Assembly (NCBI GenBank): GCA_904063045.1
Contig: CAJFCJ010000024.1
Span: 1-64,000 of the forward strand
Length of the DNA stretch: 64,000 bases
Direction of reading: 5' to 3'
Origin: Dimorphilus gyrociliatus
Lineage: Eukaryota; Animalia; Annelida
Shown: positions 282-63,138 of the stretch, one piece after another
Position numbering within the stretch: position 1 is the first letter of the stretch
Layout: each line of letters begins with the position of its first letter
The notes under the pieces: model-generated
Told to the model about the DNA's origin: nothing
Database searches by the model: none
What the model saw: only the letters and a program-made list of their open reading frames with translations
Position numbers and translations under genes: made by a program

Positions 282-1871
282 TTAAAGCTTTATAGAATGT
301 ATTTTATTGGAGTTTTTTTCTGTAATATAGAGTTGTTTTGTTGATGGATTATATTTGATGATATTTGAATGAAATTCGATGTCGATAACTTGCTGTTTTT
401 CCCTTTCATCTACTTTAAAAATTTCCAATTTTTTTAAGTTTGTATAGCCAATGATGATTGTATTTTCATCTATTGAACAAATTGAAGATGGTCTGTCTAA
501 TATTTTAGGTTGAAATTTAAGATCTTTAGATTCTTCAAACGGTTGAAAACTACTTTCAGAGTTTAAGCCATCGTATATCCATAGCCAACTCGATTCTGAG
601 CAATTCTCATCTATTGCAATAAAACAAGAAGAGCGTAATAGACAAAAAGCTTTAAAATTAAAGGATTCCTTTGGATTGCTTTTGTGACTTAAAGTCTCTA
701 CAGATAAATTTTCATCGTAATATTCTATATAAGCGTCTTTCGTTAAGCAATGAAGAATATTTAATTTATCGCAAGCAGCATCGACTATTCCATCTAACAG
801 TTTGACTGTCCTACGTTTGGACAGATTTAGATACCAAAAGTAACCCATTTGAATATAGCAAATATCTTTATCAAGTGAGAAAACAGTGTTGAACGGATCT
901 TTTGAAGTTCCTAAAATAAGAGCGTCTCCATTAGTATTTATAGAACGAATAGCATATGTTTGATTTAATTCTTTACTGCTAACTATCAAAGAAGATGATG
1001 GTCCAAAATTCGGCAGAATACCTAATATATTTTCGGCACCAGTTACTTTAACAAATACAGTTTCTTCAACAGATTCGTTTAATAACACATCTCTCTTCAT
1101 TGTTAATGATCTAAGACAATTCTCCAAAATAGTATGCATTCTTCCATCTCTTCCTCTAATTGATTGAATGACTTTGTTCATTGATTTTTGACCAAATGAA
1201 TTATAATTATGATTTAAGCGATTAATAACTTTTCTTGCTTTCAGTTCGCTTGATATGGAAAATTTTTGAAGAAAATTTTGAATGAATTCATTATTCATTG
1301 ATAAAAATGGCAATTTATTTTCCTTATTGTCATGCTTTAAACATTCCAACATACTGATTTCAGAATCTTTTTTATCATCTAGAAAATTTAAGAATGTATA
1401 GTAATCTTCCGAAATCATAAATTCTAAATAACTATGTATATCCTTATCTTTAGATGACCTTAACGTATAATACTGCTTTAGCTTTTCTCTAATATTTTCT
1501 AACTTTTTGGTAATATTTCTTATTTCAATTTTAGAACTATCCACCTTTTTATCGTCTAATTCGTGCAACGCTTTTCTATCAAGCTCGTTTGATTGTTCAA
1601 AACAATCAAAACTAGTTTCTTCTCTATTGAGATCTAATTGTTCAGAATTATTAGTTGGAGGAAGAGCTATTTCTTCTTCTTGGTCATTGCTATCTTGATC
1701 GCAGATAGTGATGAATCCGCACAGAGGACAAGAACATTCATTATAACACGACGACGTTCTAAGTAAGAATAGACAATCTTTACATAGAGTGTGTAGGCAA
1801 GAAAGAATTCTAACAGTAGTTTTTGTCACTTCATTGCCACAAAGACAACAATTTCTATATGTTTCATCCAT
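282..1871 (-). CDS. TRIM-like RING protein, no B-box; coiled coil plus NHL-like propeller C-terminus (array gene 1), intronless
   Basis: C3HC4 RING: CCLC...CLHTLCKDC...CPLC. C-terminal motifs shared with paralogs: WLWIYD, RPSSICSI, LYITEKNSNKI. Single 529-aa ORF. Confidence 0.85.
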   Translation of the reverse strand: MDETYRNCCLCGNEVTKTTVRILSCLHTLCKDCLFLLRTSSCYNECSCPLCGFITICDQDSNDQEEEIALPPTNNSEQLDLNREETSFDCFEQSNELDRKALHELDDKKVDSSKIEIRNITKKLENIREKLKQYYTLRSSKDKDIHSYLEFMISEDYYTFLNFLDDKKDSEISMLECLKHDNKENKLPFLSMNNEFIQNFLQKFSISSELKARKVINRLNHNYNSFGQKSMNKVIQSIRGRDGRMHTILENCLRSLTMKRDVLLNESVEETVFVKVTGAENILGILPNFGPSSSLIVSSKELNQTYAIRSINTNGDALILGTSKDPFNTVFSLDKDICYIQMGYFWYLNLSKRRTVKLLDGIVDAACDKLNILHCLTKDAYIEYYDENLSVETLSHKSNPKESFNFKAFCLLRSSCFIAIDENCSESSWLWIYDGLNSESSFQPFEESKDLKFQPKILDRPSSICSIDENTIIIGYTNLKKLEIFKVDEREKQQVIDIEFHSNIIKYNPSTKQLYITEKNSNKIHSIKL

Positions 1872-2037
1872 TATTATTTTAAATATTGAACGAACATGAA
1901 CGAATTTTTAAGCTTCAATCTTCTTTATACTACTGATAAGATAAGATAATATTAAAAAAAATAAGCAAAACTCCAATGTCAGTAATAATACGTATTATTT
2001 ATTTATTAAATACGTTAAACTATACGTTTGATATACT

Positions 2038-3750
2038 TTACGAAAAAATATGTAAACGATTTGTACCTTCTTCTGAAACGAAAATTTCATCAGTCTTCTC
2101 AGAATAGCTGACAAATTCTGGATGAAAATTTAAAGAAACAATTAATGGTTTTTTCGTATAATTCCCATAAAATAGGTGTAATCTTTTCGCTTCCTTATCG
2201 GCTATTATCATACCTTTCCCCTTTAATGAACAAATTCCAGAAGGATGTACAAATTGTAATGGTCCAATTGGTTCATGAGCCTTTTTACCCAACGAATCTG
2301 CGAATGATCTATCACGTGTTCTCTGTCCGTAAATCCATATACAGGAACCTTTCTTAAAAGTTTCACTCAAAACCGCTAAACGACTATTACTTAACGGACA
2401 AATACTCTTGTAGTTAGCTGAGTCCTCGTTTTCTTTCGGTCCTAGGTCACATCTTGAAATTAGTCGAAAATCTGATCCAATAATTAATTTTCCAATCGTG
2501 TTCTTCGTAATATAAATAAAGCTATTACTGTCTCCAATACAAGCATCGACAGCATCATCTATAGCTGCTAGGACAGTTATCTCATAGGAAAGGAAGTTCG
2601 AAACGCGCAACATAGAATCTGATAAAAGGACGAATAATTCCTTCTTGTACGACAAAATACTCCTAATTGGTTTCCGGAAAAACTGAAAAACTGATATTCT
2701 ATCATTTTCATCAATCTTGTATATCTTTCCTGTCCCGCCTGTGCTCATTACACTAACGTAAGTGTAACCTGTAGAACGGTGATCTGCGCAGATTGCCGTA
2801 ATTTCACCAGCTGATGGAAAGGTAACAATTCTCTCCTTTTTATCGAATTCTTTAACCAGCTCATAATCTCTTTCTGTGCAAATACTCTCCAACCTAGTTA
2901 CCATTTCAGTATAGTTAACTCTCGATAATCTGTCGGATAGGCACTCGCTGAACATATCCATAAAGATATTTGCATATTCGAATCCCTTTTTTCTATTCAA
3001 TTCAATACCTTTACTATTCGAATTGGCAATTTTAGACTGAAGATCTTGTACAAATAAGTTTAATTCTCCAAGCATTTCATTTCTAGCCTCCACGCACATT
3101 TCATCAGATTCATCAATAGATGCTATCTTTCTCTTAAGCTCATCAATTCGGTAAATTTCTTGACAGTATCGAACTTCAATGTCGCTTGCTATTTTAGTTT
3201 TAACACAGTCGACTATATCTTTTAGTGTATCTTCCAGAGAGACAGTGTCGGATATTGCATGATTCATTGTAGCAAATATTCGACATTGAATATTTTCTAG
3301 TATTTCTCTGCAACGTCTTTGAAAATCATTATGATTGATATCTTTTATTGTTACTATTTTATGATCTTTATGATTTTCATGGCAATCTACACAAAATTGA
3401 ACGGCACAAAGTTGGCAATAGAATATAATTCTTAATTTATGTTTTCTACAAATTCCAAAATTTGATGAAATTTCTAGAGCGTCGTCTGTGTCTAATAAAA
3501 GATCTGCAGGAACAAGATTATCTGCAATTCCATTAATTTTGTCCTGAGACCAAAGTGTATTTTTGTCACATATAGGACATTGAAAAGTAGATTCATCTTT
3601 TGGCTTGAATAGAGAAAGTAGACATTTCTTGCAGAATGTATGTTGGCACTGCAAAAGCTTTGGACTATTATTCAGCCACTCTTTCGTACAAAGAGAACAT
3701 TCCAAGTAGTTTTTCTTCAAAGTATAAGAATTAGCATTGCTGGCAGACAT
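2038..3750 (-). CDS. TRIM protein: RING, B-box2, coiled coil, NHL-like C-terminus (array gene 2), intronless
   Basis: RING CSLC..CQHTFCKKC..CPIC. B-box CRKH..FYCQLC..FCVDCHENHKDH. NHL-like HPSGICSLKGKGMIIADKEAKRL. 570-aa ORF. Confidence 0.92.
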   Translation of the reverse strand: MSASNANSYTLKKNYLECSLCTKEWLNNSPKLLQCQHTFCKKCLLSLFKPKDESTFQCPICDKNTLWSQDKINGIADNLVPADLLLDTDDALEISSNFGICRKHKLRIIFYCQLCAVQFCVDCHENHKDHKIVTIKDINHNDFQRRCREILENIQCRIFATMNHAISDTVSLEDTLKDIVDCVKTKIASDIEVRYCQEIYRIDELKRKIASIDESDEMCVEARNEMLGELNLFVQDLQSKIANSNSKGIELNRKKGFEYANIFMDMFSECLSDRLSRVNYTEMVTRLESICTERDYELVKEFDKKERIVTFPSAGEITAICADHRSTGYTYVSVMSTGGTGKIYKIDENDRISVFQFFRKPIRSILSYKKELFVLLSDSMLRVSNFLSYEITVLAAIDDAVDACIGDSNSFIYITKNTIGKLIIGSDFRLISRCDLGPKENEDSANYKSICPLSNSRLAVLSETFKKGSCIWIYGQRTRDRSFADSLGKKAHEPIGPLQFVHPSGICSLKGKGMIIADKEAKRLHLFYGNYTKKPLIVSLNFHPEFVSYSEKTDEIFVSEEGTNRLHIFS

Positions 3751-4279
3751 TTCTAACTGTTTATTATTTAATTATCTACTATAATAAATGATCAGAATAT
3801 TCGATTATTAAGCAAATTTTTGAAGTAAAATAATATAATCTATAAATCGGCAGGAGAACAATTTTTAGACTGGGCGGTGTTCTGTATACCCGCTTGAGTT
3901 TTACACATTTTCCAGTTGATTTGTACTCACCATATATATATAAGTATAAAAAAGATACACAGACGCACTATATATATATATATAAATGTACGCCAATATA
4001 TTTAATAGGCCTAAAAGAACTTTAATAGATTTAACAAAAGATAATTTATAATTTATTTTAATATTAAATTTATTCATCAAGAAAAAAGAGAGATTAATAA
4101 ATCATTAGATAAACATTTTAATCCTTAAAACAACTGTTTCCTTTATCAATATTAATTAATTAATTAATTTTTAATTAACAAATAGATTTTTAAATAAATA
4201 AACGTGTTTGTTTTTGTTATTAAAAACTTTTAAAAAAAATACGAAGATAAGTTTCTTCTTCTTTTTTTAAAAAATTTTC

Positions 4280-5068
4280 TTAACCAAATATATATACGAC
4301 TAAAAAAAATATAAGGATTATAACTATTAAACAGATATTACTCTGTATCAAATTAATAAGGGTTTGATCGTAAATAGACTGATCTCTTATTTCTAAAGTA
4401 TTTGATATTTTCTCAAATTTCGATACTAAAATTGAATATTTCTTATATAGAGATTCAATTCTTGCCTCCTCCTTTTTAAATAAGTCTTCACCTATAATTT
4501 TAACCCTCTTCCTCAACTCTGGGATTTTTCTTTCGATCTCAACTACGCCGTTATTCAATGAATCCATACTAATTTCCATTCTTTGTTTTAGATCTTCCAT
4601 AACCGTATTACATTTTATAAGGAAACTACCATTTCCTAAATAATCTAACCAAGGTTTTAGATCGTGATCTTTATGATCATTCCAACACTCTTTACATACT
4701 GGAACATTCCAACATTGGCGGCAAAAGAATAACACTTCCGCTTTATGTTCAACGCAAACTGATGTAACGTTACTTAGATCTTCAACATTATCCTTCTCTT
4801 TAGAAACACTTAAAACATTCCACGCTATCCGATTTCTGATCAGACCATCAGCTCCTTCTATTGGCCAATAAAAAGCAGATCTACAAATAGGACATAAGAA
4901 GTCGATAGCTTTATTCTTCAATTGAAGCTGATTCAAACATTCTTTGCAGAATGTATGCTGACAAGGTAGAACTCTTGGATCTCTATGTAGCCAGTTTTCG
5001 CAGCAAATGGGGCAAGTAAAGTAATCTTCTTTCAACTCGTACCTCAAATTCTTTGATGCTTCATCCAT
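4280..5068 (-). CDS. Short TRIM: RING, B-box2, coiled coil, C-terminal hydrophobic tail anchor (array gene 3)
   Basis: RING CPIC..PRVLPCQHTFCKEC..CPIC. B-box CVEH..CRQC..CKECWNDHKDH. Ends NICLIVIILIFFLVVYIFG-stop with no propeller. Confidence 0.85.
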   Translation of the reverse strand: MDEASKNLRYELKEDYFTCPICCENWLHRDPRVLPCQHTFCKECLNQLQLKNKAIDFLCPICRSAFYWPIEGADGLIRNRIAWNVLSVSKEKDNVEDLSNVTSVCVEHKAEVLFFCRQCWNVPVCKECWNDHKDHDLKPWLDYLGNGSFLIKCNTVMEDLKQRMEISMDSLNNGVVEIERKIPELRKRVKIIGEDLFKKEEARIESLYKKYSILVSKFEKISNTLEIRDQSIYDQTLINLIQSNICLIVIILIFFLVVYIFG

Positions 5069-5998
5069 ACTGTCTTTGTTCTACTGTTACTCTTGAGTTC
5101 TATTATTCAATCTATTCATCTATATCAAACGTAGGAATATACGCAATCATCGTATTTTCTTAAGATATTCTTTGATATTTATAAAAATTAATTGCAAATG
5201 TTTCTACTTCGTTCCAATGTTAAGTAATGAAGTATTGTAGATTTGTTATTAAAGGCTATTTTAAAACTGAGTAGTTTTAGGAACAATATACAATTTTGTT
5301 ATAATAATCTGCCTAAAACTGGTAATAACTTTTATTAATTATGCTTAATAAGGCATAAATTAATTTAGCTCAAAGTAAGAACCGGACAAACACTAATTAA
5401 AAAGACAGGATAATAATCTTAAAGAATTTGTTACACTCTAATTAATTAGCTTAACTAATTATTGAAGCTCGGATTTGAGAGTATAGACTAATACTACATG
5501 AATATATTCGTTTTATGCATATAAAGCAAGATATGTCATTCTTGTTTATCAAGGTAAATCAATGGCAACAGTGGGAGAGAGGGAGCCAGAGAATTAGAGA
5601 AAGAGAAAGAGAATTACTTGCTCAAACGAAAGATTTTCGATGAAGCATTTCCAAAGTGTTACTTATGAAGAGTTGTATAATTCGCATTGTATTATTTTGA
5701 AAAGAAAGCTGTTATTATACGAAAAATAACGTTAAAATCTATCAATTAATGATTAAAGAGCTAAAAGCTAACTGATAAAATCATATTTTTTCCCTCTTTC
5801 GTAATTAATATATAGTTATAATCTATAGCTTTCTAACTCTTAATAGGTTATATTTAATCAATTAGAATTGAATATTTTCTTGAAATTCACAATTACATAG
5901 TCTTTAAATCTTCTTAAAAGAAGTAAATTAGTTACAGTTATTTAGAAAATATAGAGTAGGAGCTTCTCTCTTAATCTTCTGTTTAAACTGTCGCTTTT

Positions 5999-6031
<33 letters not shown>

Positions 6032-6210
6032 GCTCTCTGCCTTTTTCTAATCTCAAGATATTCAAGTCAAGTAAATAAATTATATAAAATATACTATACA
6101 CGGTCTTTCTACGATTGCTTGATGAATATATCTATCTGGGTATATGTAAAAAAATAGTGTTACAGTTTGTTTAATACTGCTTTTTAACTTGAGTAATATT
6201 AATAATAACA
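5069..6210. promoter_or_regulatory. Divergent intergenic region between TRIM genes 3 and 4
   Basis: Head-to-head start codons 1.14 kb apart, with purine/pyrimidine tracts. A shared promoter is inferred from geometry only. Confidence 0.4.
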
Positions 6211-7989
6211 ATGGCGGAATCAGCAGACAATAATAAAAGTTACGAATTAAATGCTGATTACTTCGATTGCCCAGTCTGTTCTGACAGTTGGCTATCAAAA
6301 GATCCGAGAGTATTACCTTGTCAACATACATTATGCAAAGAGTGTTTAGGCAAGTTGGAGCACAAGGAATGCGTCGGCTTTGATTATATTGAAGATGTTA
6401 TAAATTGTCCTGTTTGCAGATTAACGGTAGTATGGCCGGAAAGAGGAATAGACGGATTTCCAAAAAATCTAGTAGCATCTAATGTAACAATAAGCAAAAA
6501 ATTAGATCAAGTGAATAATTTAAATTGCGATAAACACGGCTTAGAAATTATCTTTGTTTGCTGTTTTTGTTCAAACATTCCAATTTGTAGAAAATGTTGG
6601 AAGAATCATGAAAATCACAAATTAAAAGTTTATGAAGATTATATTAAATCGAAAAATTTTAAAGATAAATGTAACGAAGCTCTTGAACAGTTTAAACAGC
6701 ATTTTGATAAGTCGTACTCGAATTTGGCATTGAATGATGATAGGGTAGAAAAGATAATTAGTCGTGCAATACATCAAGTTAAAGAAAGTTGTATTCAAAG
6801 TAGAAAGAAAGCTATCGAAAATATAAATGAAAGATTAGAAATATTAAAACAAGTTGCAAATGATAAAGAAAACTGGAATTCTCTCAAAGAGCTTGAATTT
6901 GGAAATAAGGTATTACATTCAATACAAAGTGAATTACAAGAGAGCGAACATTACAGTATAAAAGCAAACAATACTGAAGAAATGGAAAGAAAGATTATTA
7001 ATTTTGCAACTGAACTTTTCCTTGCCAAAGAGAAGACTGGATCTACAGGGAAAATATTGGAATATCATAACTTATTAATACAAATTGAAGATTTATTCCG
7101 AATATGTCGTGAACCTAAATATCCCTATAAATTGTTCAATTTTGAAGATGTTAGAGAAATAAATAGGGTAAAATTTCCAGTTGTTTTATGCATTCACGCT
7201 ATGTGCTATCATATGGATAATTTTAATTCGCTTTATTTGAGCGTTACTACAGTTTATGAAAAGGCTATTATATGGCAGTTGAATTCGAATAACTTTGAAA
7301 TAATGAAAACATTTCGCCTAGATAAGATTGCCCAGAGCATAATGATTTTTAAGGATGAAGTTTATTTATGTAATTGCGAAGCTATTGTTAAACTTGACGA
7401 AACCCCTATCCTCATTACTAGAATTGAAAATGCGGTTGCTGCTATCGCGGGAGATGGAAATTATTTTATTTGTATAACAAAGCATACAATTAAAAAAGTT
7501 GTTATGGATCCTTTAATAAATCAAGTAATCGTTATTGATATTGGTCCTGGTATAGCTCCGCATTTAACTCAGTATAAGAGTATTTGTAATTGGAAGAATG
7601 ATTTTGTGATTGTTCTTGATGGCAGTTTTAGAGGTGGAAAGTGTATATGGATTTACGACGTTGATCAAAATTGTAGAAGAAGTATCTTTTCGTGCGGTAA
7701 ATATAGATCGCCAACTATAAATAAAGAAGAGCCGCTGTTTTTCGAAAATCCATTAAGTATTTGTTCGATAAATAATGATGTTGCCATTGTATCTGATTCA
7801 GGTTTAAAAAGACTACAAATATTTATAAATTCTATGGAAAATAAGCCAAAAACATATACTTTGGATTTTAGTCCAGATCTTATTTGCTTCTCTCCGAATA
7901 AAGAAGAGATCTATGTCTCCGAAAGAAGAGGAAATAATATACTTATATTATCTTATAAAGACTTTCCAACTAAGACAAGAAACGATTGA
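6211..7989 (+). CDS. TRIM protein: RING, B-box2, coiled coil, NHL-like C-terminus (array gene 4), intronless
   Basis: RING CPVC..PRVLPCQHTLCKEC..CPVC. Post-RING WPERGIDGFPKN. B-box CDKH..CCFC..CRKCWKNHENH. C-terminal CIWIYD and NPLSICSI. 592 aa. Confidence 0.92.
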   Translation: MAESADNNKSYELNADYFDCPVCSDSWLSKDPRVLPCQHTLCKECLGKLEHKECVGFDYIEDVINCPVCRLTVVWPERGIDGFPKNLVASNVTISKKLDQVNNLNCDKHGLEIIFVCCFCSNIPICRKCWKNHENHKLKVYEDYIKSKNFKDKCNEALEQFKQHFDKSYSNLALNDDRVEKIISRAIHQVKESCIQSRKKAIENINERLEILKQVANDKENWNSLKELEFGNKVLHSIQSELQESEHYSIKANNTEEMERKIINFATELFLAKEKTGSTGKILEYHNLLIQIEDLFRICREPKYPYKLFNFEDVREINRVKFPVVLCIHAMCYHMDNFNSLYLSVTTVYEKAIIWQLNSNNFEIMKTFRLDKIAQSIMIFKDEVYLCNCEAIVKLDETPILITRIENAVAAIAGDGNYFICITKHTIKKVVMDPLINQVIVIDIGPGIAPHLTQYKSICNWKNDFVIVLDGSFRGGKCIWIYDVDQNCRRSIFSCGKYRSPTINKEEPLFFENPLSICSINNDVAIVSDSGLKRLQIFINSMENKPKTYTLDFSPDLICFSPNKEEIYVSERRGNNILILSYKDFPTKTRND

Positions 7990-7993
7990 TGAT

Positions 7994-8020
7994 AAACAAA
8001 CAAACAAACAAACAAACAAA
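7994..8020. repeat. (AAAC)n microsatellite
   Basis: About six tandem AAAC units right after the gene 4 stop. Confidence 0.9.
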
Positions 8021-8614
8021 AAATACTAACAGTCTATTTTTTTAAGCCTTTTAACAAAACGAAAAAATTCAAAGTAACATAATCAACTTCTATATTTTCC
8101 CTAATTAAATAAAAAAAATGTTAATAAAAATTTATATTGTCTATTATTGTAATAATATGAATATTCATTAGCTGGATGAATTGTATTATAAGGGGGTAGA
8201 AAGACAAAAAAAGGGAGATAACTTTTAAACAAGGCTTCAAGGAAGAAGTTGGTGATAAATGAAGGAAATGAGAATAAAAAATCAATAAAGTAAAGAATAT
8301 CTAATATATAAAAGAGATAAGAAAATAATCTTTTATATCCTTAAAAGTAAAACTTTAAGACAAATGACTATTTTTTATTGACTATAAAGTACTCTTCTGT
8401 AATAGCTTAAGTGTATATACTATAATTCTTATTAGAATAAGATATCAATATGTATAACGAAAATCCCTTTGAGTAATGAATAACGATTATGTTGAGAGTG
8501 TCTTCCTCCATGCCTCACTAGTTTATAACTATATTTCCTATCGATTAGATATTATTCGCGTAAATAATATATTAGATACTAGTTATATTGTATTATCTAT
8601 TGCTCGTTATGCTT

Positions 8615-8616
<2 letters not shown>

Positions 8617-8647
<31 letters not shown>
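8617..8647. repeat. (TA)n microsatellite
   Basis: TA run upstream of TRIM gene 5. Similar runs lie at about 42281-42313, 57640-57664 and 61404-61432. Confidence 0.85.
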
Positions 8648-8654
<7 letters not shown>

Positions 8655-8720
8655 TTATATTATTATTATATTAATGCAATATAACTTATCACCTATAATC
8701 TGTACTTTTTTATTTTAAAA

Positions 8721-10430
8721 ATGGCTGCTTTAGAGAGTGCATTCTTAAAAATTAGTGAAGATTATTTCGAGTGTGCGATCTGTTTTGAGCAATGGATTTA
8801 TAGGAACCCGCGAGTGTTTCCCTGCCAACATACTTATTGTGGTATATGTATTGATGAATTATGGAAGAGTTGTAATCAGGCGATTTCTATTTCTTGTCCT
8901 CTGTGTAAGAAATTAGTAAATTGGCCTAACGAAGGTGTAGATGGATTTCCGAAGAATTTGGTTGCGTCTAATATTTATTTACCTGAGAAAGATGATAAGA
9001 AATCAATGTGTAAAAAGCATGAAAAAGAGATAATCTTCGTCTGTAAAGATTGCTTTGATGAGAAAATCTGTCAAGGCTGTATCACAGATCATTCAGCTCA
9101 TAATTTACTTACTTTAGATAATTATATAAGAGATGGAAAAATGTATCATGGATGTCACAAGATCAATAATATATTAAAGTCTCTTCATCAATACCAAAGA
9201 AATGTTATTGCTAAAGATAGTTATCTTCTTAAGGAGTTACCATCAACTATATGTTGTATAATTGAAGAGAAACAAACAGCAAATATAAAGAAGTTAGAGA
9301 TGATTAAAAAATGTATTTCAAGAATTACTACTTTTATTCAATTAAAGGAAAATTTTAACGATGAAGAATTGAATGATACAAGTCAAATATTAGAAAAAAT
9401 AGAGAATATTTTACCGAATGTAGACAATTTAGATTTTAAAAATAACGAATACGAAGGAAAATTATTTATGAATTTAAAGAATATGCTTTTATCAAAGGAG
9501 CTAAACGATCCTAAAAATGTTAATTTGAACTATGCAGAATTATTACAGAATTTTGATAAGATTCTCACATCAGATATCTTATATAAGATATCAAAAAATC
9601 TATCTTCCATAGATTATTTACATTTCAGCTCTGAGCGGTCTATTAATATTCAGAATATTGTTGAGATATTTTCAGTATGTTCTCATTCTGATGGTTTTAT
9701 CTATATGGGTGTTTATGCACAAAATACACTCAAATGGGCATGGTTAGGTTATTTAGATAATAAAAGAAGTTTTGCTATTTGGAAAGTTAATGAAAAGACT
9801 CTAAAACCGGTAAAAAAGTTCCAATTAAATGAATTACCTAATAGTATTATTGAACATAACAGAGAACTTTACGTAGGTTTTAAAAGTTCCGTTCAGACTT
9901 TGAATGAGTCATTAGAAATTGTTCTAAAAAGGAAGAATATACTTCATTCAATAAGGCAAGTTATACCAAATGATAAAAATTCATTAATATTCAGCACAAA
10001 TAATTCTATTGAAAAGTTAAGTTTTAACGAAAGTGAATCGAGCAAAACAAGGATCAAAACGCTATTGAATTCTGTTCATTTTAATGGTCAAATATGTAAT
10101 TGGAAGGAGAATTCATTAGCTCTTCTTGTTGGAAGTAAATTAATAATATACAAACCAGAAAAGGAAATAATCAAAACAATAGAGTTAAGGAATCAAATAT
10201 ACTTTAATAGAAAAGTATTATTTTCGTCAATTCTATCAATAAATAATGATTTTTTAGTCATTTCCGAATATAATTCAAAGACTTTAACGATATTCTATAA
10301 CGTTGAAGATGAACCGCAAATCTATAAATTGGATGTTAGACCACGTAAAATTTGGCATATAGAAAGTAGAAAAGAAATTTGGATAAATAACGGAGTTAAC
10401 AAGCTAATTGCTTTATCCTATGCCCACTAA
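8721..10430 (+). CDS. TRIM protein: RING, B-box2, coiled coil, NHL-like C-terminus (array gene 5), intronless
   Basis: RING CAIC..PRVFPCQHTYCGIC..CPLC. WPNEGVDGFPKN. B-box CKKH..CKDC..CQGCITDHSAH. 569 aa. Confidence 0.92.
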   Translation: MAALESAFLKISEDYFECAICFEQWIYRNPRVFPCQHTYCGICIDELWKSCNQAISISCPLCKKLVNWPNEGVDGFPKNLVASNIYLPEKDDKKSMCKKHEKEIIFVCKDCFDEKICQGCITDHSAHNLLTLDNYIRDGKMYHGCHKINNILKSLHQYQRNVIAKDSYLLKELPSTICCIIEEKQTANIKKLEMIKKCISRITTFIQLKENFNDEELNDTSQILEKIENILPNVDNLDFKNNEYEGKLFMNLKNMLLSKELNDPKNVNLNYAELLQNFDKILTSDILYKISKNLSSIDYLHFSSERSINIQNIVEIFSVCSHSDGFIYMGVYAQNTLKWAWLGYLDNKRSFAIWKVNEKTLKPVKKFQLNELPNSIIEHNRELYVGFKSSVQTLNESLEIVLKRKNILHSIRQVIPNDKNSLIFSTNNSIEKLSFNESESSKTRIKTLLNSVHFNGQICNWKENSLALLVGSKLIIYKPEKEIIKTIELRNQIYFNRKVLFSSILSINNDFLVISEYNSKTLTIFYNVEDEPQIYKLDVRPRKIWHIESRKEIWINNGVNKLIALSYAH

Positions 10431-10603
10431 ACTAGAAAAGAGAGTAGATTCTGTCCCTGATTTATTATGATTCTGTTTTTTTAAAGAAAATACAATTAAT
10501 TAAATACTATTTTATTGTTTTGATATAATTATTCAAATTTATTCAAGAGCTTATTCAAAATATGTCAATGCCAATATATAAATATATATAGAGAGGGACA
10601 GAG

Positions 10604-10606
<3 letters not shown>

Positions 10607-10650
<44 letters not shown>
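10607..10650. repeat. (GA)n microsatellite
   Basis: About 22 GA units between convergent TRIM genes 5 and 6. Confidence 0.9.
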
Positions 10651-10653
<3 letters not shown>

Positions 10654-10701
10654 AGTATAATATAAAGCAAACAAAAAGAAACAGCTATACATGATATACA
10701 A

Positions 10702-12498
10702 TTAGTAACCTGGTAAATTAATGGACAATACAATAATATTTGAGGTACCGTGTTCTGTTACGTATAATTCTCTGTTGAAAGACGAATAGTGTACAATATT
10801 TGGATGAATGTCCAAATTAACTATTAGTGGTGGCTTATCTATTGCTGTAAAGACTTGCAGTCTTTTATTACCGCAATCCGTAACAATTAACAATTCATTT
10901 TCAACGCTACAAACGCTACATGGATAACAGAAAGTTAATGGCTTAGCTAGGCCTAATTTAGCCGGTTCGTACTCTCCAAAAGATATAATATCTCCTTGAT
11001 TATTATTACTGGAAAACATATCATAAGCCAAAATGCAATTGTCGTTAGAAAAAGCTGAATCGAGAACAATTATCTTATCTTTCCATATACAACAATCCCT
11101 AAAGTCGATCAAACTCTCATCAACATCCTCCTCCTTTCCAATAACCCAGTCTACAGAACTTTCAGCATTCGAAAAAAGCCTTATCTTTCTTACAGAATCT
11201 TTTGTCAAACAAACAATTGTATTATCATCCAAAGTACAAGCAGAAATAACGTTATCTATTTTAAATACTGGCTCCTTCCTTTTTGAATTTAAGGTATAAA
11301 TACCATCCGATGAACATAAGAATATCTCATTACGTAATATAAATATCTTTGTAACAACGTTAGGCATTAAAAACTTCTGTTCAACACTGTAATTTCTAGA
11401 TGATAACTTTAATAGATAACTGCCACCATTCGTTTCGGTAATACTTATATAAATTGAATTTAAATATTCAATTAGTACGTGTACATTCGTTAAATTAGAT
11501 AATTTGATTTCTGATTTCACTGTTATGCAATCCTCGTCAATTGTGTCGTTATCATCTGATTCATTGTCCGATAGTTGCTCTCTTAATATAAACTTTTCAA
11601 AACCATTTATTAAAGGGTTAAAATCAATATATTGTTCAAGCGTACTACCTCTTTCCATAATTAGAAATAGACGATCGGAAAAATCAATCATTACTTGCCT
11701 TAAATCATCATTTGGAAATTCGAGATCGAAAATTTGATTTTCAATCTCTTCTTGAATAATCTTTAGGAAATCATTGTTTACTTTATCGCTTTTACGGCGA
11801 ATAAATAATTTCTTATCGATAACATTTGTTTGTAATTTAACGAGCATTGAATGAGTATCTTCAACTTTTCTATACCATTTATCTAATATCTCTTCTTTAG
11901 CTTCTTGAATACATTCGGCCATTTTATTCTCAATTTCTTTCGTTTTATGTACAAGGGCATCTAAAAACTCATTACATTGGTCTTGAGCATTTGACAACAT
12001 GCTAAGACATTTCTCGCGAAATTCTTCATTATCATTATAGCTCATTAGGGGCATTAGTTTATGATTTTGATGATTATTCCAACACAGCCGACATAACTTT
12101 GCATCGGAACAAGTTAAACAAACTAATTCTATTTCCTTTTTATGCATAAAGCAGGATTCTTTTTTAATTCTATCGCCTTCGTTTTCATGATCTTCTTCGT
12201 CCTCTTCTTCAGTATCATCTAAGCCTTCGCCATTAGGAAAGCTAACGTTCGAAACAATTCTACTTTTTGGAAAGCCGTCCTTACCGCTATCTGGCCAACG
12301 AACAGACCTTCTACAACTAGGGCAAGATATATAACTTTTTCTACCGGAAGCTTTCCAAATTCCCTCTATACATTCCTTACAGAATATATGTTGGCAAGGA
12401 AGGATACGAGGATCCCTTTTCAGCCAATATTCAGTGCAAATAACGCACATGAAATAATCGTCGTTTATCATAAAGCATTTTTTACCACTTTCCATCAT
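10702..12498 (-). CDS. TRIM protein: RING, B-box2, coiled coil, NHL-like C-terminus with acidic inserts (array gene 6), intronless
   Basis: RING CVIC..PRILPCQHIFCKEC..CPSC. B-box CFMH..CLTC..CRLCWNNHQNH. C-terminal YPCSVCSVENELLIVTDCGNKRL. 598 aa. Confidence 0.92.
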   Translation of the reverse strand: MMESGKKCFMINDDYFMCVICTEYWLKRDPRILPCQHIFCKECIEGIWKASGRKSYISCPSCRRSVRWPDSGKDGFPKSRIVSNVSFPNGEGLDDTEEEDEEDHENEGDRIKKESCFMHKKEIELVCLTCSDAKLCRLCWNNHQNHKLMPLMSYNDNEEFREKCLSMLSNAQDQCNEFLDALVHKTKEIENKMAECIQEAKEEILDKWYRKVEDTHSMLVKLQTNVIDKKLFIRRKSDKVNNDFLKIIQEEIENQIFDLEFPNDDLRQVMIDFSDRLFLIMERGSTLEQYIDFNPLINGFEKFILREQLSDNESDDNDTIDEDCITVKSEIKLSNLTNVHVLIEYLNSIYISITETNGGSYLLKLSSRNYSVEQKFLMPNVVTKIFILRNEIFLCSSDGIYTLNSKRKEPVFKIDNVISACTLDDNTIVCLTKDSVRKIRLFSNAESSVDWVIGKEEDVDESLIDFRDCCIWKDKIIVLDSAFSNDNCILAYDMFSSNNNQGDIISFGEYEPAKLGLAKPLTFCYPCSVCSVENELLIVTDCGNKRLQVFTAIDKPPLIVNLDIHPNIVHYSSFNRELYVTEHGTSNIIVLSINLPGY

Positions 12499-12734
12499 CC
12501 TAACTGATCAAAGAGTTAACAAATAACAACACACAATTTCAACACTTTGGCTTTATATACTCCCTTTTATTATTAATTAATTAATTGAGTAGTAATCAAT
12601 AATATTAAACAAGTTAAAAAAACAACAATTCTTTTATATTAAGACTTTTTCTTTCTATTTTAGTTAGATTGTTTTAAAGATTCTTGCGACCTAAATTTTA
12701 ATTAAAAAAAGAAAACATCATTAATTATCATTAA

Positions 12735-13415
12735 TTAACACGTCAAATTGCACATTTTTGTATTTTTTAAGCATATTATTGATATAATATAAAATATAAT
12801 TAATAACGATACGCATAGTAATTTTAGTTTGATCTTAAAAATAAATGAATTTAAGCAAATTATAGAAAATATTAAAGAAATTAATAATTTTATATAATAA
12901 TTTGCATAAATTAACATAATAATGTTAATTGAAAATGTAATAAGAAAAGATAGAAATAATAAATATAGAATATTTAAGAATTTGTTTCTCTTATTCATTT
13001 TATCTTTTTCAATATTATTACCATTCGTTAGAGTATTTGAATCCAATCTATCTTTAATTCGGCTTATTAATGGTAAATATCTTGAATTTAGATGATTTAA
13101 TCTGTTCTCTTCATTCGTTAGAAAATCATATCTCAATTCTTTCATTCTAGAATTCCGAAAATTGATACTAGCCGTTGTCGTCTCTCTCTTTTCTAATGAT
13201 GATTCCAGAGGTACAATTTTATGATTGACGTGATTTTTTCCCCAACATTTTAAACATAAAAAAGTGCTAGAACAACTTTGACAAACAAACAATGCGTCCG
13301 AAGGACGTTCTAGACATAGCTTACAACCTTTTTCACCATCATCCTTGTGCGTATTATTTACATCGCCCTCTCTCGGAAACAAAGAGAAGATATTAAGACA
13401 AGAGAAATAGACCAT
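12735..13415 (-). CDS. RING-less B-box protein with 2-3 C-terminal hydrophobic segments (array gene 7)
   Basis: B-box-like CKLC..LFVCQSC..LCLKCWGKNHVNH, short helical region, then about 70 aa of F/L/I-rich segments. The true start is uncertain because the first codons overlap a polypyrimidine/acceptor-like tract. Confidence 0.65.
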   Translation of the reverse strand: MVYFSCLNIFSLFPREGDVNNTHKDDGEKGCKLCLERPSDALFVCQSCSSTFLCLKCWGKNHVNHKIVPLESSLEKRETTTASINFRNSRMKELRYDFLTNEENRLNHLNSRYLPLISRIKDRLDSNTLTNGNNIEKDKMNKRNKFLNILYLLFLSFLITFSINIIMLIYANYYIKLLISLIFSIICLNSFIFKIKLKLLCVSLLIIFYIISIICLKNTKMCNLTC

Positions 13416-14645
13416 ACTATAGAATGATTAAGTAACTAAGAAAAGAAATAAAGGAAATAACGTAACATTTTAATAGTTGATAAAGCGAATATACTGTATT
13501 TATAGCAATACCTTTAGAGTTACCTCTTTCTATCAACTCTTTAGCAAAATTAAAGCCAAACGTTTAATTACATTTCAATAGGCCTATTAAAATCATTTAG
13601 TATATACTTAACTTCCGAATTGAGCTATATAGCATACAAAAAAGAATATTAGTTAACATAATGTGTTGAGTAGTGCAGTCAATACTTTTTGGACTAAAAA
13701 AGACACAAGTAAAACTAATCAAAGTTACTCCATCTGTATTCTATTGTTATCATTATTAGACAAATTTGTACGTAAAGATTATTGAATATAAACTTAATTT
13801 ATACTCTATATAGATTACGATTAGTAATTTTTTATCGTTATTTATTTCCTTTATATAATAATATTAAAAGCCCACATCCTTTTACTTATGATGTACAAAG
13901 TTAATTTATATATTATGTTATATAATGGATATTTAGACATTTGTTTAAGCCTAAAAAAGAAATATATATACTGTATATACTGTATATACACAAATATCCG
14001 GCCAGTCTTTTTTATTTTATGTAATCCTAACAAACATAATTGATAGATTATAGAGGCCTAATGGTATTTTGCTACTATTTCCCTTATCTCTTATCAAAAA
14101 AAAAACACAACACAGAATACAAAACGAAATTGAGAAACCAAAGGTAAAGTATAGGTATATACTGTATTATTATAAGTTATATGTCTATAAATAGTTTCAA
14201 ATGCAGATAGATATAGAGACAGAAAATATAATAATATGTGTAAAGTTGTTATTTCCTCACACTGATTCTTTTGATTATACAGAACAGGAAAAGAAGTAAA
14301 ACTTCATTATGAAAAAATTTTCGAAACTTTACGAATTCTTTACCGTTTCTAAAGGTAAAACTCATATTTATACTATAAATATTAATACAACATCCTATTT
14401 ATAAATACCGTAAAATTAACTATATCATAATATTTAAATTCTATAAACTGTATAATATATAGTATATATATATATAGACTGTTGTTTGTCAAGTTTGTGT
14501 CTATCATTATAAAATCTATACTCGTTTTTTAATTTAACATAAAAATAAAAAGTACAAAGTACGTTAAATGGTATTAAATAAGCCATTTGCCATAAATAAA
14601 ACGAAAGAAGAACAATTGCTTGGAGAAAACAAAAAATTAACTAAC
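13416..14645. promoter_or_regulatory. Divergent intergenic region between TRIM genes 7 and 8
   Basis: Head-to-head start codons about 1.2 kb apart. A shared promoter is inferred from geometry only. Confidence 0.4.
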
Positions 14646-16349
14646 ATGGCCGAATTTGTTGTGGATAAAACGTATGAAAATCTTGAAAATGTATGTCTTA
14701 TTTGCTTGGGAAAATTTACAGATGGAAATAAAATTATGTACGATTGTTATCATTCGTTCTGTAAGAATTGTTTGGATAAAAATTTAAGAAATAGACGTCT
14801 AAAGAGCTTATTATCTTGTCCAATTTGCTTTAAAGGTATTATTGAAGAGAGAAGATTTAATTCAAGTTCATACCAATATGACAAGGTAGATAGTTGCAAA
14901 CATTTTGATAAAGAATTAATAGTATGTACAGATTGCTTCAACTGTCTGATTTGTCAATTATGTATTGGTCAACACAAAGAACATAAATATATATATTATA
15001 AGGATTTCCTTAAAAGAGATCAAAAGTTTTGGACAGATTATGAAACTGCAACTAATGATTTAAAGAAACGCTCCTTATACGATTCATCTGTTATGTTTGG
15101 CGAATTTAAACAGCAAATACATAGTGAGTTTGATAATATTGAAAAGTTAACTGTAGTTAGATGCGGAAAAGAATGTAATAGAGTACTCGATAAGATCAAT
15201 AGCAAAATGATTAAACTCCAAGAATCAATTGATAGAAAAAAGAAAACATTTGCTTCTGAAATAATGGAAATTTATGGTTCAAATGTATTAAATAAATTAA
15301 AATGGGAGTTAACTTCTGACATGAATAACATAATGGAATTTCCCAAAGAATTAAGATTAAAAATAGAAGATCTCTTAAAAGATTATATAAAAGAAAGAGT
15401 TAATAAATTATTAGTAAAGTACGATCTATTAATTAAAAAGTTTGATAAATTAATTAATAATAATAATTTTTTAATTAATTGTCCAATGAATGATAGAATT
15501 CTATATGATTTATATTATATTAAGAAAAAATCTATTAAAAAATCTAAATTGATTCATTTCTTAGCCTTTTCCAATGAGTTAAACGATTACGGACAAAACG
15601 AAAGTATAATGCTAAGTATTAGTAAAAATAATAATAAATATGCCATTCTTCGCTTAAAGGCTAGTAACTTTAAAGTAACTAATGAATATTTAGTAGATGA
15701 AATTGTGAAAAAAATCACTTGCTATAAAAATATGATTATTTTATTCTTTGAAAATTCAATATGCAAATTAGATGATCGTCTTTCGGTGAATATTGAAATT
15801 ACGGATATAATTGATGGAAATTTTGGTGAATGTTCTTCGTATTTCCCTGAAAATTTTTTCTATATAACAAGTAATTCAATAAATGTTATGCCAAGGAAAT
15901 ATTTCTCTGATATATATCTAACCGGTATAAATTGGCAAGTTGAGGCTTACAAGCACTTGCCAGCAGATTATCTAGGTCTAATACGTTTATCTGGCTTACT
16001 AACAGCATTTGCTGTTGTATTTTACGATAAGAATTTAAACGGCATTTACTTGTCATCATTCTATAAAAGCAAAATTCTAAACTGTTGGAAAATATTAACT
16101 GGTTACCAACCAATATCATTCTGTTGTTTAGAGGATTGCGGAGTTATTATTGCTCATAACACAAAGAAGAAACTTTTGATTTTTCCCAATGTTTTATCCG
16201 GTTCAAGCTCAGAGAGAATGGAATATGTAATAGATTTCGTTCCAGGTTCTATATCATCTTCTAAATTTAGCAAAGAAATTATCATTGTTGAAAATAATAC
16301 GAATATTATTCATATCTTTAAATATAGCGCTTCTTTGAGAGAACTGTAA
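14646..16349 (+). CDS. Divergent TRIM protein: RING, B-box, coiled coil, NHL-like C-terminus (array gene 8), intronless
   Basis: ORF 14568-16349; the second Met (14646, MAEFVVDK) gives a paralog-like leader length. RING CLIC..CYHSFCKNC..CPIC. B-box CKH..CTDC..CQLCIGQHKEH. C-terminal YQPISFCCL and EIIIVENNTNIIHIF. Confidence 0.85.
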   Translation: MAEFVVDKTYENLENVCLICLGKFTDGNKIMYDCYHSFCKNCLDKNLRNRRLKSLLSCPICFKGIIEERRFNSSSYQYDKVDSCKHFDKELIVCTDCFNCLICQLCIGQHKEHKYIYYKDFLKRDQKFWTDYETATNDLKKRSLYDSSVMFGEFKQQIHSEFDNIEKLTVVRCGKECNRVLDKINSKMIKLQESIDRKKKTFASEIMEIYGSNVLNKLKWELTSDMNNIMEFPKELRLKIEDLLKDYIKERVNKLLVKYDLLIKKFDKLINNNNFLINCPMNDRILYDLYYIKKKSIKKSKLIHFLAFSNELNDYGQNESIMLSISKNNNKYAILRLKASNFKVTNEYLVDEIVKKITCYKNMIILFFENSICKLDDRLSVNIEITDIIDGNFGECSSYFPENFFYITSNSINVMPRKYFSDIYLTGINWQVEAYKHLPADYLGLIRLSGLLTAFAVVFYDKNLNGIYLSSFYKSKILNCWKILTGYQPISFCCLEDCGVIIAHNTKKKLLIFPNVLSGSSSERMEYVIDFVPGSISSSKFSKEIIIVENNTNIIHIFKYSASLREL

Positions 16350-16768
16350 TATCTATATTATAGACTCTTATATACTAATATATATTAGTACATTTGTTTT
16401 TATATTATTTAAATAAACCCTCTATTTAAATAACTTTATTCTAATTTCGGAGTAGCCTTAATTGGCAAATAATTAATTAATTATTAATTGATAAAACAGT
16501 TTCCCTTTCGTATTTAATGGTAATTTTTGTATGGCCAACTAGAGCACAATAGCTTATTTTCTGGTTTTTTTTCCTTTTTCTCTCTCTCTCTCTGTTTCTT
16601 CTTTCTTTTCCTGTTTTTATTACATCAGCCTACTCACATACGCGCCTTCTCATTCTTGAACTGTCTATTAGCAATATTTCAAAAAATTGAAGGTGTATTT
16701 CTTTCTGTCTCTCTGTTCAAAATAATTCAAATTAATTTTCTACGATTTCAGGTAGGACTAATTTGAAA

Positions 16769-18672
16769 ATGGAAAATTTGGAACCTGATGAATCAGAGGT
16801 AGAGATTCTTCCCAATGCAAATCAAACTGATTGTCCCATATGCATTAACTGTTACATAAGAAGAAATCCAAGAATTTTACCTTGCGCTCATACTTTTTGC
16901 TCCGTTTGCTTAGAACAATATGCCTTGTCAAAAAGAGTAGGAGTAGGAGATACATTGGCATGTCCAACGTGTGAAACTCATGTCAAATGGCCTAGTAAAG
17001 GCAGTTTAGGATTCCCGAAAAACAACTACTTTATAGAAAGAGATAGTGCAATTGAAGGAGCAACAGCAGCAGTTAGCGTTATAATACCCAAAGAAGATGA
17101 TCATATGTTTCAGCAAATGTTTGAAAATAACCTTCCTGATATTTCAAATTGTTTAAAACAACTTGAAAATCATTTAATACATCTTGAACACGAAAAATTT
17201 AATCTACTATCCAAAATTGATCTTTGTAGACTACTTGCTATCGATAAAATGGATAAATGGGTGAGCTGTATGAGAACTGAGGTTGAAGATAGGTAAATAT
17301 ATATCAGTATATATACCGTATAAACCATTATTAAATCTATTGGTTTCTTATATATTATTCAGATTTGCAGAAGACAAAAAACTTCTAAAGCAAATTCAAT
17401 TCGATCTCGAAAATTTAAATAGCGATGGTATTAGTTGATAATTTTCTTTCTTCATTTCTTTATTGATGCTCTGTTTTTCATATTCTTAGATACAAAAGAT
17501 ACATTAAACGTTCTCTTAAATGAAAAAGAAGCTCTTCTATCAAAGAAATTATCTTTAGTTAGTCATAATTTTTCTGTTGGTGAATTAAAACTTATCGAAA
17601 GAGAAATTATACTTGAAGAGTATCATACTGAAGAAATTGATTGTTACACAATCACGGCTTGTTGCTTAGGACCAGATAATCATTTGTACATACTCATTGA
17701 CAAATATAGAAGTTGGTATTATTTAAAGATGGAGAGATATTATCATTTTTCAATTTCTCTTTTTTTAGCAAAGGATAATAAATCAAAGGTGTTCGTTATC
17801 GAAAGGTATAGCGCAGATGGAAAACTTATTGAAGAAGACTGGTCCTGCCATCTAGAGGGCGACTATAGAGGTTTGGCTCTTGATTGCGAAGGAAATATGT
17901 ACTTGTGCGACAAAACTGCAATAAGGTTATAAAACATTCTTATATATTCAATCTTATTATTAATGTTAAAATCTCTTTTAGATTAGGCAGAACAGCAAAC
18001 TGCATTGTAAAGGCAAGTATAAAATATCTATTATCTATTGCAAACTATCCAAAAAATACTTATACGTCTTTTGAATAGATTTTAAAAAATGGAACACTAA
18101 AATCAAGAATTCTACAATTACCCGACAACGAAGAATTATCAACAGTTGCTGTTGACTCGACGGGAATTTATGTTGGTATTGATAGCGGTATTACGAAAAG
18201 AAGTATTGAAGAACACACAATAAGAATTTTGAAATATGATCTACAAGCTAAAACCTTGATGTGGCATTTTCAAGATCAATCATTTGGATTAGGAAAAATG
18301 TTTTCCATTGATGATTATTTAATACTTACAAGAATTCACGATGAAAAGATAGAAGTAATTCATCGTGATAGTGGAGAGAAAATAAAAAATTTGAACTTTA
18401 ATTTTAAAGAATCAGGCGATTCTCCCGCTTGGCCTAGTTCAATAGCTCCTCTTCCAATGAATTGTTTTATTTCAGCAGTTCAAAAACTTAAACAATTATT
18501 CGTATTTGACAAAGACTTGAATGTTTTACAGAAGATATCACTAGAAAAGCAAAATATACCTGTGAGCGTTATAACATGGTCAAATTTAGAAGGAAACTTT
18601 CTTCTGTTGCATTATAATTGTAAATTAGATAGAAAGCGTTATTTGTCATTCAGAAAAATTCTCTATAAGTAA
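16769..18672 (+). CDS. Intron-containing RING, coiled-coil, NHL-like protein (array gene 9), 5-6 coding exons
   Basis: RING CPIC..NPRILPCAHTFCSVC..CPTC plus WPSKGSLGFPKN. Frame-preserving introns at 17293-17362, 17428-17489, probably 17712-17768, 17926-17981 and 18013(or 18007)-18078. NHL-like YRGLALDCEGNMYLCD and WPSSIAP. Confidence 0.8.
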
Positions 18673-20495: not shown

Positions 20496-26100
<5,605 letters not shown>

Positions 26101-62321: not shown

Positions 62322-63138
62322 TTAACATGTACATTGTTTTCTCATCTTGATTAACTTAGGATTAATACCGAGCTTGATAGATCTCATCGCCATTGCGCGA
62401 TTGAAATGCCTCTGAGTTTTAACAGCGTCGTTCGAATCGTCCAATCCTGAGTCGATTGACGTGAGAATACCACATAGGACGCCCAAAACTAAAAACAAGA
62501 TGATAAATAAAGTATAATAAGTAACTGTTGCGTCCGATCCGGCGTTCAATTCTTTTAAATGAGCTTGTGCTGGACCGAAACCTGGATTCAAATCTAAAGC
62601 GTGCTTGAGATGTAGGGCAGCCTCGGCATTATGGCCATATGCTTTTAAAATTTCACCCAATGTAAAATGCTGTAACCAAGTATTTTGGTCCTGTGGTGCG
62701 GCATCCAAGGATTGCCTAGTCAATTGAATAGCGTCATCTAAGTAGTGTAGATTAAACAAAACTCTGGCAAGATTCAACAGAGCGTCCGAGTGACGAGGAG
62801 ACAGAGCTAAAGCTTTGCGAAAGCATTCTATAGCAAGATAAGTATCACCCTTTACCCGCCAAAGATTGCCAATTTGATTATAAATGGATGCGGAATTAGG
62901 CTTTTCTTTTATGGATTTTTTCAACTTTCTCTCAATTTCTTCCAAGTTTACTTCTTTGCCAGATTTTTTGCGGAGAATCATCGCAACTTCTGGTTCAGCT
63001 ACATGAGGATGGGAATGACGTCCAGCAACCCCTCTGAGATGATCTACATGAGTAGAATTAACAGCTTTCCCACAGTCTAAAGTTTTCTTTTTTTGCTTTT
63101 TATTCTTCTTACCTTGGCCATTTATTTTTGTACCCTCT
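62322..63138 (-). CDS. 3' exon of a TPR protein, TTC17-like, with a C-terminal TM segment
   Basis: TPR motifs NQIGNLWRVKGDTYLAIECFRKAL, LLNLARVLFNLHYLDDA and HFTLGEILKAYG..LKHALDLNP. TM YYTLFIILFLVLGVLCGIL. Splice acceptor at 63139-63140; upstream exons not resolved. Confidence 0.75.

Follow-up and report, generated by a model that had tools for sequence, protein, structure and literature searches.

A tandem array of RING and B-box genes with NHL-like propellers in Dimorphilus gyrociliatus, probably an old and lineage-restricted TRIM cluster

Does a tandem array of nine divergent RING and/or B-box genes in a small annelid represent a rapidly evolving set of pathogen sensors, or an older complement of ubiquitin ligases that has been kept largely intact? 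The question is raised by a stretch of 64,000 nucleotides from Dimorphilus gyrociliatus (hereafter the window), which begins at the start of scaffold CAJFCJ010000024.1 in the published genome of the species (assembly GCA_904063045.1; PMC10735302), so that window and scaffold coordinates are the same, and which has a GC content of about 30% throughout; according to the list of open reading frames (ORFs), the nine genes, g1 to g9, lie at 282-18672. The original prediction, made from the letters of the window, took them for a candidate locus of intracellular immune receptors. Our analysis indicates that they probably form an old, lineage-restricted cluster of paralogues encoding RING E3 ubiquitin ligases of TRIM subfamily C (the TRIM2/3/32/56/71 type), conserved and not demonstrably subject to fast turnover, a reading that is carried by the restriction of the family, by the pairing of its members with genes of a close relative and by the overall purifying selection that acts on them.

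The array and the restriction of its family

The dense packing of RING/B-box genes is confirmed by the ORF list together with Pfam, and so is the claim that eight of the nine are single-exon: g1-g8 are uninterrupted ORFs, g9 being the sole interrupted one, with about four GT-AG introns of 55-70 nt, sizes that agree with the median intron of 66 bp in this species (PMC7854359). The layouts of the encoded proteins are given below in window order; profile A2 was built from nine propeller sequences.

g1, 282-1871, minus strand: RING-coiled coil-propeller protein of 529 amino acids without B-box, read as an ORF; RING ligands intact in the alignment; propeller recovered as A2 profile match P0006
g2, 2038-3750, minus strand: RING-B-box2-coiled coil-propeller, 570 amino acids; several Pfam RING models and the Pfam B-box; profile match P0004
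g3, 4280-5068, minus strand: short RING-B-box-coiled coil protein of 262 amino acids that ends in one transmembrane tail (residues 244-262); Pfam RING
g4, 6211-7989, plus strand: RING-B-box2-coiled coil-propeller, 592 amino acids; full-length AlphaFold 2 (AF2) model
g5, 8721-10430, plus strand: RING-B-box2-coiled coil-propeller, 569 amino acids; basic propeller
g6, 10702-12498, minus strand: RING-B-box2-coiled coil-propeller, 598 amino acids; acidic propeller with a Pfam NHL repeat
g7, 12735-13415, minus strand: B-box-coiled coil protein without RING, with about three C-terminal hydrophobic segments, 226 amino acids
g8, 14568-16349, plus strand: RING-B-box-like-coiled coil-propeller, ORF of 593 amino acids; likely start at the second methionine, 14646
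g9, 16769-18672, plus strand: intron-containing RING-coiled coil protein without B-box, with a divergent beta-rich C-terminus; 549 amino acids in a five-exon model

The model of g9 joins exons 16769-17292, 17363-17427, 17490-17925, 17981-18011 and 18079-18672 of the plus strand, its splice sites having been read from the DNA and its frame staying open over 549 codons. Two further gene models call for comment. In the protein collection g5 has been called from an internal methionine as a product of 474 amino acids (P0005), which hence has no RING; the ORF and the 582-residue orthologue of the relative support the 569-residue form with RING. The translation of g8 probably starts at its second methionine, because its orthologue in the relative (P0007, 575 amino acids) begins at the corresponding position.

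When profile A2 was run without word index on 1.84 billion representative proteins, full-domain matches were confined to eight clusters (E values from 1e-24 to 1e-105), which correspond to g1, g2, g4/o4, g5, g6 and g8/o8 (the prefix o designating genes of the relative) and to two genes of one close relative. All remaining matches had E values no better than 1e-10 and came from canonical NHL-repeat proteins, which repeatedly matched profile positions of about 200-275. All members of this propeller subfamily detectable in D. gyrociliatus sit within the array; a further RING protein of the species, P0077, resembles the family weakly and over blades 5-6 only (E 0.002). A 1:1 orthologue in any TRIM outside the lineage was not found among these representatives, and a word-indexed homologue search with g6 returned g6 itself and one orthologue only. 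The lineage specificity that had been postulated thus holds, the profile matches being limited to the locus and one close relative. In animals the subfamily comprising TRIM2/3/32/45/56/71 and malin has ancient roots (PMC3503706), and among TRIM groups only the NHL/filamin subgroup has been noted as expanded in invertebrates, as seen in fly and worm (Sardiello et al., PMC2533329), so that an invertebrate expansion of NHL-type TRIMs will come as no surprise to specialists.

Orthologue pairs and the age of the paralogues

Contigs of three runs assembled by Logan (SRR23372216/28/29; GC 24-26%) represent the relative, and we regard them as genomic because several genes share a contig and low-complexity stretches occur at contig ends. 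Eight of the nine genes (g1 and g3-g9) have a supported partner in the relative. On contig L001 the orthologues of g7, g6, g5, g4 and g3 follow one another as they do in the window, orientation included, with amino-acid identities of 39-41% (g7/o7), 61% (g6/o6), 59-61% (g5/o5), 72% (g4/o4) and 70% (g3/o3), and contig L004 carries those of g8 (P0007, 59% identity) and g9 (conservation seen by tblastx) side by side. The head-to-head arrangement of g3/g4 recurs in o3/o4, that of g7/g8 having been seen in the window only. The partner of g1, o1 (P0009; L007:272-1849), is 30% identical to it and retains a B-box; g1 may accordingly be the fastest-changing member, having lost the B-box that o1 keeps, unless the pair is not truly orthologous.

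A maximum-likelihood tree was built from 20 family proteins, the partner of g9 not being among its rows, and each window/relative pair tested received 92-100% bootstrap support in it. The terminal branches of g3-g6 and g8 are short (0.1-0.4) and the branches leading to the pairs are long (0.7-2.3), the deep nodes staying without resolution; the presence of supported pairs above such long paralogue branches indicates that all paralogues are older than the split of the two species. A duplication of a four-gene module (g2/g6, g4/g8, g5/g9) as the origin of the array is neither shown nor rejected by the tree, since the free tree pairs none of these couples and approximately unbiased (AU) tests reject none of them either (p 0.11-0.37).

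Rates of nonsynonymous (dN) and synonymous (dS) change were obtained for the two species by the Nei-Gojobori method on codon alignments, YN00 having failed on most segments from saturation. Whole-gene values, whose ratios are rough at such dS, are as follows.

g3, g4, g5, g6 and g8: dN 0.17-0.28, dS 1.4-1.8, dN/dS 0.11-0.16
g1: dN 0.73, dS 1.72, dN/dS 0.43
g7: dN 0.54, dS 0.99, dN/dS 0.54

Amino-acid identity to the orthologue differs between the two halves of the proteins, as given here.

g4: RING/B-box 84%, propeller 70%
g5: RING/B-box 71%, propeller 49%
g6: RING/B-box 74%, propeller 54%
g8: RING/B-box 48%, propeller 66%

The propeller thus changes faster than the RING/B-box region in g5 and g6, less clearly so in g4 and not in g8, so that no domain is consistently the fastest. 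The differences between g6 and o6 are spread across strands and loops, blades 1-3 being 43-49% and blades 4-6 64-70% identical, and no enrichment was found in the putative top loops (top and bottom having been assigned without coordinates). In its supported partners, its deep paralogue splits and its low dN/dS in g3-g6 and g8, the array appears to depart from the evolutionary pattern of TRIM5- or finTRIM-type arrays to which it had been likened.

The isoelectric point (pI) of the propellers spans 4.7 to 9.4 among the paralogues, and it is similar within pairs for g5 (9.35, against 9.32 in o5), g6 (4.70 and 4.93) and g8 (8.65 and 9.07); the values for g2 and g1 are 8.6 and 5.3, and the partner of g1 has the opposite propeller charge (pI 9.2). 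Propellers that lie far apart between paralogues and yet are kept between species suggest that each paralogue may have a stable target of its own.

Gene content is not identical in the two species. The relative has an additional gene, oX (L001:4489-5157, minus strand), which encodes a RING-B-box-coiled coil protein of 222 amino acids between o6 and o5; the corresponding site of the window measures only 271 bp (10431-10701) and contains a (GA)22 tract at 10607-10650. Downstream of o1, the segment L007:2141-6098 holds three more family genes, two for RING-B-box proteins of 331 and 328 amino acids and one for a B-box-coiled coil-propeller protein of 457 amino acids; a word-indexed search found no D. 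gyrociliatus partner of the last of these. An 84-residue ORF upstream of o1 in L007 was considered as a g2-like C-terminus and was rejected on comparison. With only 281 bp between g1 and the start of the scaffold, the assembly may have truncated the array, and since the three extra genes of L007 would fall past that start, the D. gyrociliatus array may continue off the assembled scaffold. Within the window, tblastn with all family proteins as queries detected no family fragments beyond the nine genes, and apart from CT/GA tracts no repeats at the DNA level were seen between the paralogues.

Domains, fold and kinship

Pfam identifies a RING in g2-g6, g8 and g9 and does so weakly in g1, although the ligands of the latter are intact in the alignment. 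Alignment A3, which comprises 17 family proteins and excludes g7 and g9, shows seven RING cysteine ligands and eight B-box2 Cys/His ligands to be nearly invariant, the latter in the pattern C-x2-H-x7-C-x2-C-x5-C-x2-C-x3-H-x2-H. Pfam B-box scores are 28.0 bits for g2, 23.7 for g7, 19.9 for g6 and 15.2 for g4, the cut-off of 24.1 being exceeded by g2 only; g1 and g9 have no B-box. In g7 there is no RING domain, and a RING-coding ORF or exon looked for upstream of it was not found. With phmmer, the N-terminal 150-170 residues of g6 gave their best matches to PDB sequences in TRIM2 (5e-11) and TRIM3 (1e-10), followed by TRIM56 (9e-8), and the matches to the TRIM2/TRIM3/TRIM71 class over RING, flanks and B-box range from 5e-11 to 2e-9. 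The designation of the genes as TRIM-like RING E3 ligases is therefore sound as far as sequence goes, with an N-terminus nearest to TRIM2/TRIM3/TRIM56; homology and fold lend good support to their identity as RING E3 ligases, from which ligase activity would be expected.

A leader and RING motif, (Y/F)-x-(L/I)-x2-(D/N)-Y-(F/L)-x-C-x2-C-x3-W-x4-P-(R/K)-x-(L/F)-(P/Q)-CQH, had been attributed to g2-g6; a regular-expression search finds it exactly in g2, g3, g4 and g6, g5 deviating at one leader position, and it retrieves the post-RING motif WP-x2-G-x2-G-(F/L)-x-(K/R) in g3-g6 and g9, just as described. The notion that these motifs are specific to the family did not survive comparison: in phmmer alignments g4, from its leader through the first half of the RING, matches the same segment of human TRIM2 residue for residue, and the post-RING CPVCRLTVVWPERGIDGFPKNLVASNV of g4 is likewise aligned to a TRIM2 segment. 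Since both motifs align to TRIM2, they are best seen as RING-flanking segments typical of the TRIM2/3/56 group that have been locally substituted.

The full-length AF2 model of g4 (mean predicted local distance difference test, pLDDT, 75) comprises the RING, the B-box, a 77-residue helix at 141-217, three further helices (224-246, 253-275 and 285-296) and an all-beta propeller at 315-581, the helical part having a pLDDT of 50-70; the long coiled coil after the B-box is thus present in the prediction. The last helix ends at 296 and the propeller begins at 315, which leaves no room for a filamin/Ig domain, and Pfam detects no Filamin domain in the array proteins. The lack of such a domain between coiled coil and propeller gives the layout of TRIM32/Thin or TRIM56 and not that of TRIM2/3/71. 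Neither is there a Pfam SPRY match that would indicate a B30.2/PRY-SPRY domain in the array proteins.

The claim that the six full-length intronless members end in homologous but very divergent NHL-like propellers is corroborated by identities of 19-30% between paralogues and by structure prediction with AlphaFold and Foldseek, as had been suggested. Residues 316-598 of g6 (283 amino acids), folded with nine family sequences, form a predicted propeller of 23 strands (pLDDT 85; predicted template modelling score, pTM, 0.86). Foldseek ranks the NHL domains of Drosophila Thin (6d69) and human TRIM2 first by template modelling (TM) score and identity (TM 0.67; 15-17% identity), and a VIA search, which is independent of Foldseek, returns Lin41 (Z 23.2), TRIM71 (23.0), TRIM2 (22.6), Brat (22.2) and Mei-P26 (22.1); identity of the g6 propeller to RNA-binding NHL domains is 10-14%. 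The Pfam NHL repeat of g6 scores 26.4 bits (cut-off 20) over residues 523-550, which are strands a-c of blade 5. In g2 the NHL score is 19.3 bits, just below the cut-off, g4 also falling below it and g1, g5 and g8 having no match. The propeller profile reaches canonical NHL proteins solely via blades 5-6, and the C-terminus of g9 matches the family propeller weakly, by the blade-5 motif only (E 0.04). On the predicted structure, the full-length proteins end in a six-bladed propeller that is probably of the NHL kind and has kept a recognisable NHL sequence signature in its last two blades only.

Among characterised proteins, TRIM32/Thin (Abba) and TRIM56 share with the array the order RING-B-box2-coiled coil-six-bladed NHL(-like) propeller without filamin/Ig domain; the NHL domain of Thin is one of the best Foldseek matches and the RING of TRIM56 is a top sequence match. 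The coding regions of TRIM32 and NHLRC1 are also single-exon. Clear NHL repeats are likewise missing from the NHL-like C-terminus of TRIM56 (PMC2533329). The array differs from these proteins in that its propellers are only 10-17% identical to theirs, with a single blade recognisable as an NHL repeat, and in that its genes form a multi-copy tandem cluster. TRIM2, TRIM3 and TRIM71 (class VII) provide the best sequence match for RING, flanks and B-box and also come closest to the propeller in structure (Z 22.6-23.2), but their filamin/Ig domain is missing from the array, and so is the B-box1 of TRIM71. The TRIM5/6/22/34 cluster and the finTRIMs of vertebrates are likewise lineage-specific sets of TRIM paralogues that lie in tandem and vary in their C-terminal recognition domain, whereas the array has a propeller in place of B30.2/PRY-SPRY, and its paralogues are old, kept as orthologue pairs and under overall purifying selection.

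Two short members carry membrane tails. That of g3 consists of one strongly hydrophobic segment (Kyte-Doolittle 2.98) with which the protein terminates and which is kept in o3, and that of g7, with its roughly three hydrophobic segments, is kept in o7; the ORF ends of both genes are conserved in the relative as well. The RING-B-box-coiled coil-transmembrane layout of g3 and o3 is shared, in architecture only, with TRIM13/TRIM59 (class XI), yet the nearest sequences to g3 are its neighbours g4/o4 (35-38% identity) and not TRIM13/59, which makes its membrane tail look like a convergent, independent gain; g7 departs from that class in lacking a RING and in the number of its hydrophobic segments. 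Both genes would then have lost the propeller and acquired a membrane anchor, and their products probably position a ligase or a coiled-coil partner at a membrane.

Possible roles and surroundings of the array

We infer from homology and fold how such proteins might work: the RING with its TRIM2-like flanks would recruit a ubiquitin-loaded E2, B-box2 and the long coiled coil would dimerise the protein, and the six-bladed NHL-like propeller would pick the target, be it protein or RNA. TRIM-NHL ligases are usually seen as a few deeply conserved developmental regulators; here a small annelid with a streamlined genome keeps a private and strongly diverged set of TRIM-NHL-type paralogues, which includes membrane-anchored derivatives. 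Several observations weigh against the old, conserved cluster of subfamily C ligases that we favour. No transcript-derived contigs with g1, g3, g4 or g6 turned up, and look-ups of the exact g1, g3 and g4 proteins gave the genome scaffold only; dS is saturated (1.0-1.9), which leaves the dN/dS ratios rough, and site-specific positive selection lies beyond the reach of a two-species comparison; g1 and g7, with 30% and 41% identity to their partners and the two highest ratios, evolve fast; oX and the three L007 genes, for which no D. gyrociliatus partner was seen, point to gain or loss between the species; lactonase-type six-bladed propellers score within one Z unit of the NHL matches; and the Pfam NHL cut-off is reached by one of six blades, in g6 alone.

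The original prediction held that the array is an innate-immune sensor or restriction locus whose propellers act, in an arms race, as variable modules of pathogen recognition, much as B30.2 does in TRIM5/22 and the finTRIMs. Such a role would suit paralogues that are tandem, intronless, lineage-restricted and highly divergent, with some gain and loss between species (oX, the L007 genes, the B-box of g1) and with the propeller as the least conserved part of g5 and g6 (49-54%, against 71-74% for RING/B-box). It would also suit the report that the few expanded families of this species are mostly locally duplicated genes of immune type, which are left unnamed (PMC7854359), and the link of oyster TRIM genes to herpesvirus resistance (PMC9437489); TRIMs are not among the expanded families named in the main text or four supplementary files of the genome paper (PMC7854359). 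We nonetheless consider this explanation unlikely, given that eight of nine genes retain a supported partner despite saturated dS, that the paralogue branches are deep and the terminal ones short, that dN/dS is low in five genes, that the propeller of g8 is better conserved than its RING/B-box, that the putative top loops show no concentration of the differences between g6 and o6 and that propeller charge is stable between orthologues. Nor do any immune-type genes occur among the neighbours of the array in the window, where the flanks hold an ABCC-type transporter, a G-protein-coupled receptor (GPCR), a Nup62-like protein and a tetratricopeptide repeat (TPR) protein. An immune role is possible but unsupported, the evolutionary pattern leaning against a fast arms race. 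For the basic propellers, a role as RNA-binding post-transcriptional regulators in germline or development, comparable to Brat, LIN-41/TRIM71, Mei-P26 and NHL-2 and with an RNA motif proper to each propeller, is equally open. In structure the closest neighbours are NHL domains that bind RNA, those of TRIM71/Lin41, Brat, Mei-P26 and NHL-2, several propellers are basic (g2, g5 and g8), a property kept in o5 and o8, conservation between orthologues suits fixed endogenous targets and the NHL/filamin subgroup is the one that expanded in invertebrates (PMC2533329); the acidic propellers of g6 and g1, on the other hand, argue against RNA binding by those two, the filamin domain is absent, and at the identity noted above the binding residues are not comparable. 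We hold a regulatory role of this kind to be quite unlikely for the array.

A decidedly doubtful proposal is that of a dinophilid-specific intracellular surveillance system in which the propellers would read pathogen proteins or RNAs, and in which the membrane-tailed g3 (with g4) and g7 (with g8) would, by way of coiled-coil heterodimers, tether the full-length ligase next to it to an organelle membrane or gate it there; if true, it would constitute a TRIM-based sensor design in which a propeller replaces B30.2. More generally, should an immune or RNA-surveillance role apply, the array would be an independent, propeller-based counterpart to the B30.2 TRIM expansions of vertebrates. One might take the genes for retrocopies in decay, for pseudogenes or for ORFs that arose by chance in AT-rich DNA, given their lack of introns, the missing transcript contigs and hydrophobic tails of low complexity that AT-rich sequence could yield. 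This idea is very improbable and has been largely refuted by the orthologue comparison, in so far as ORFs of 529-598 codons are intact at 30% GC and have counterparts of matching length in the relative at saturated dS and a dN/dS well under 1, the zinc ligands are conserved, the fold is predicted with confidence and the transmembrane tails keep their C-terminal ends. Regarded as an old, conserved TRIM cluster, the locus is a clearly delimited gene family to be annotated and has modest appeal as a candidate for studies of expression and selection.

The start codons of g4 and g9 are each preceded, at a distance of about 180 bp, by a CT-rich tract, (CT)10 at 5995-6049 and (CT)7 at 16557-16619, and these tracts may be promoter elements; CT tracts of at least five units were not found upstream of the other seven genes. 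Directly after the array, at 20745-26100 on the plus strand, lies a multi-exon ABCC-type transporter gene with TMD0, two ABC_membrane and two ABC_tran domains; being split across several ORFs, it indicates that intron-bearing genes are normal in this region. Farther along the window, on the minus strand, are exons of a rhodopsin-type GPCR (35845-36309), of a Nup62/Nsp1-like nucleoporin (42426-43142) and of a TPR-repeat protein (62322-63149).

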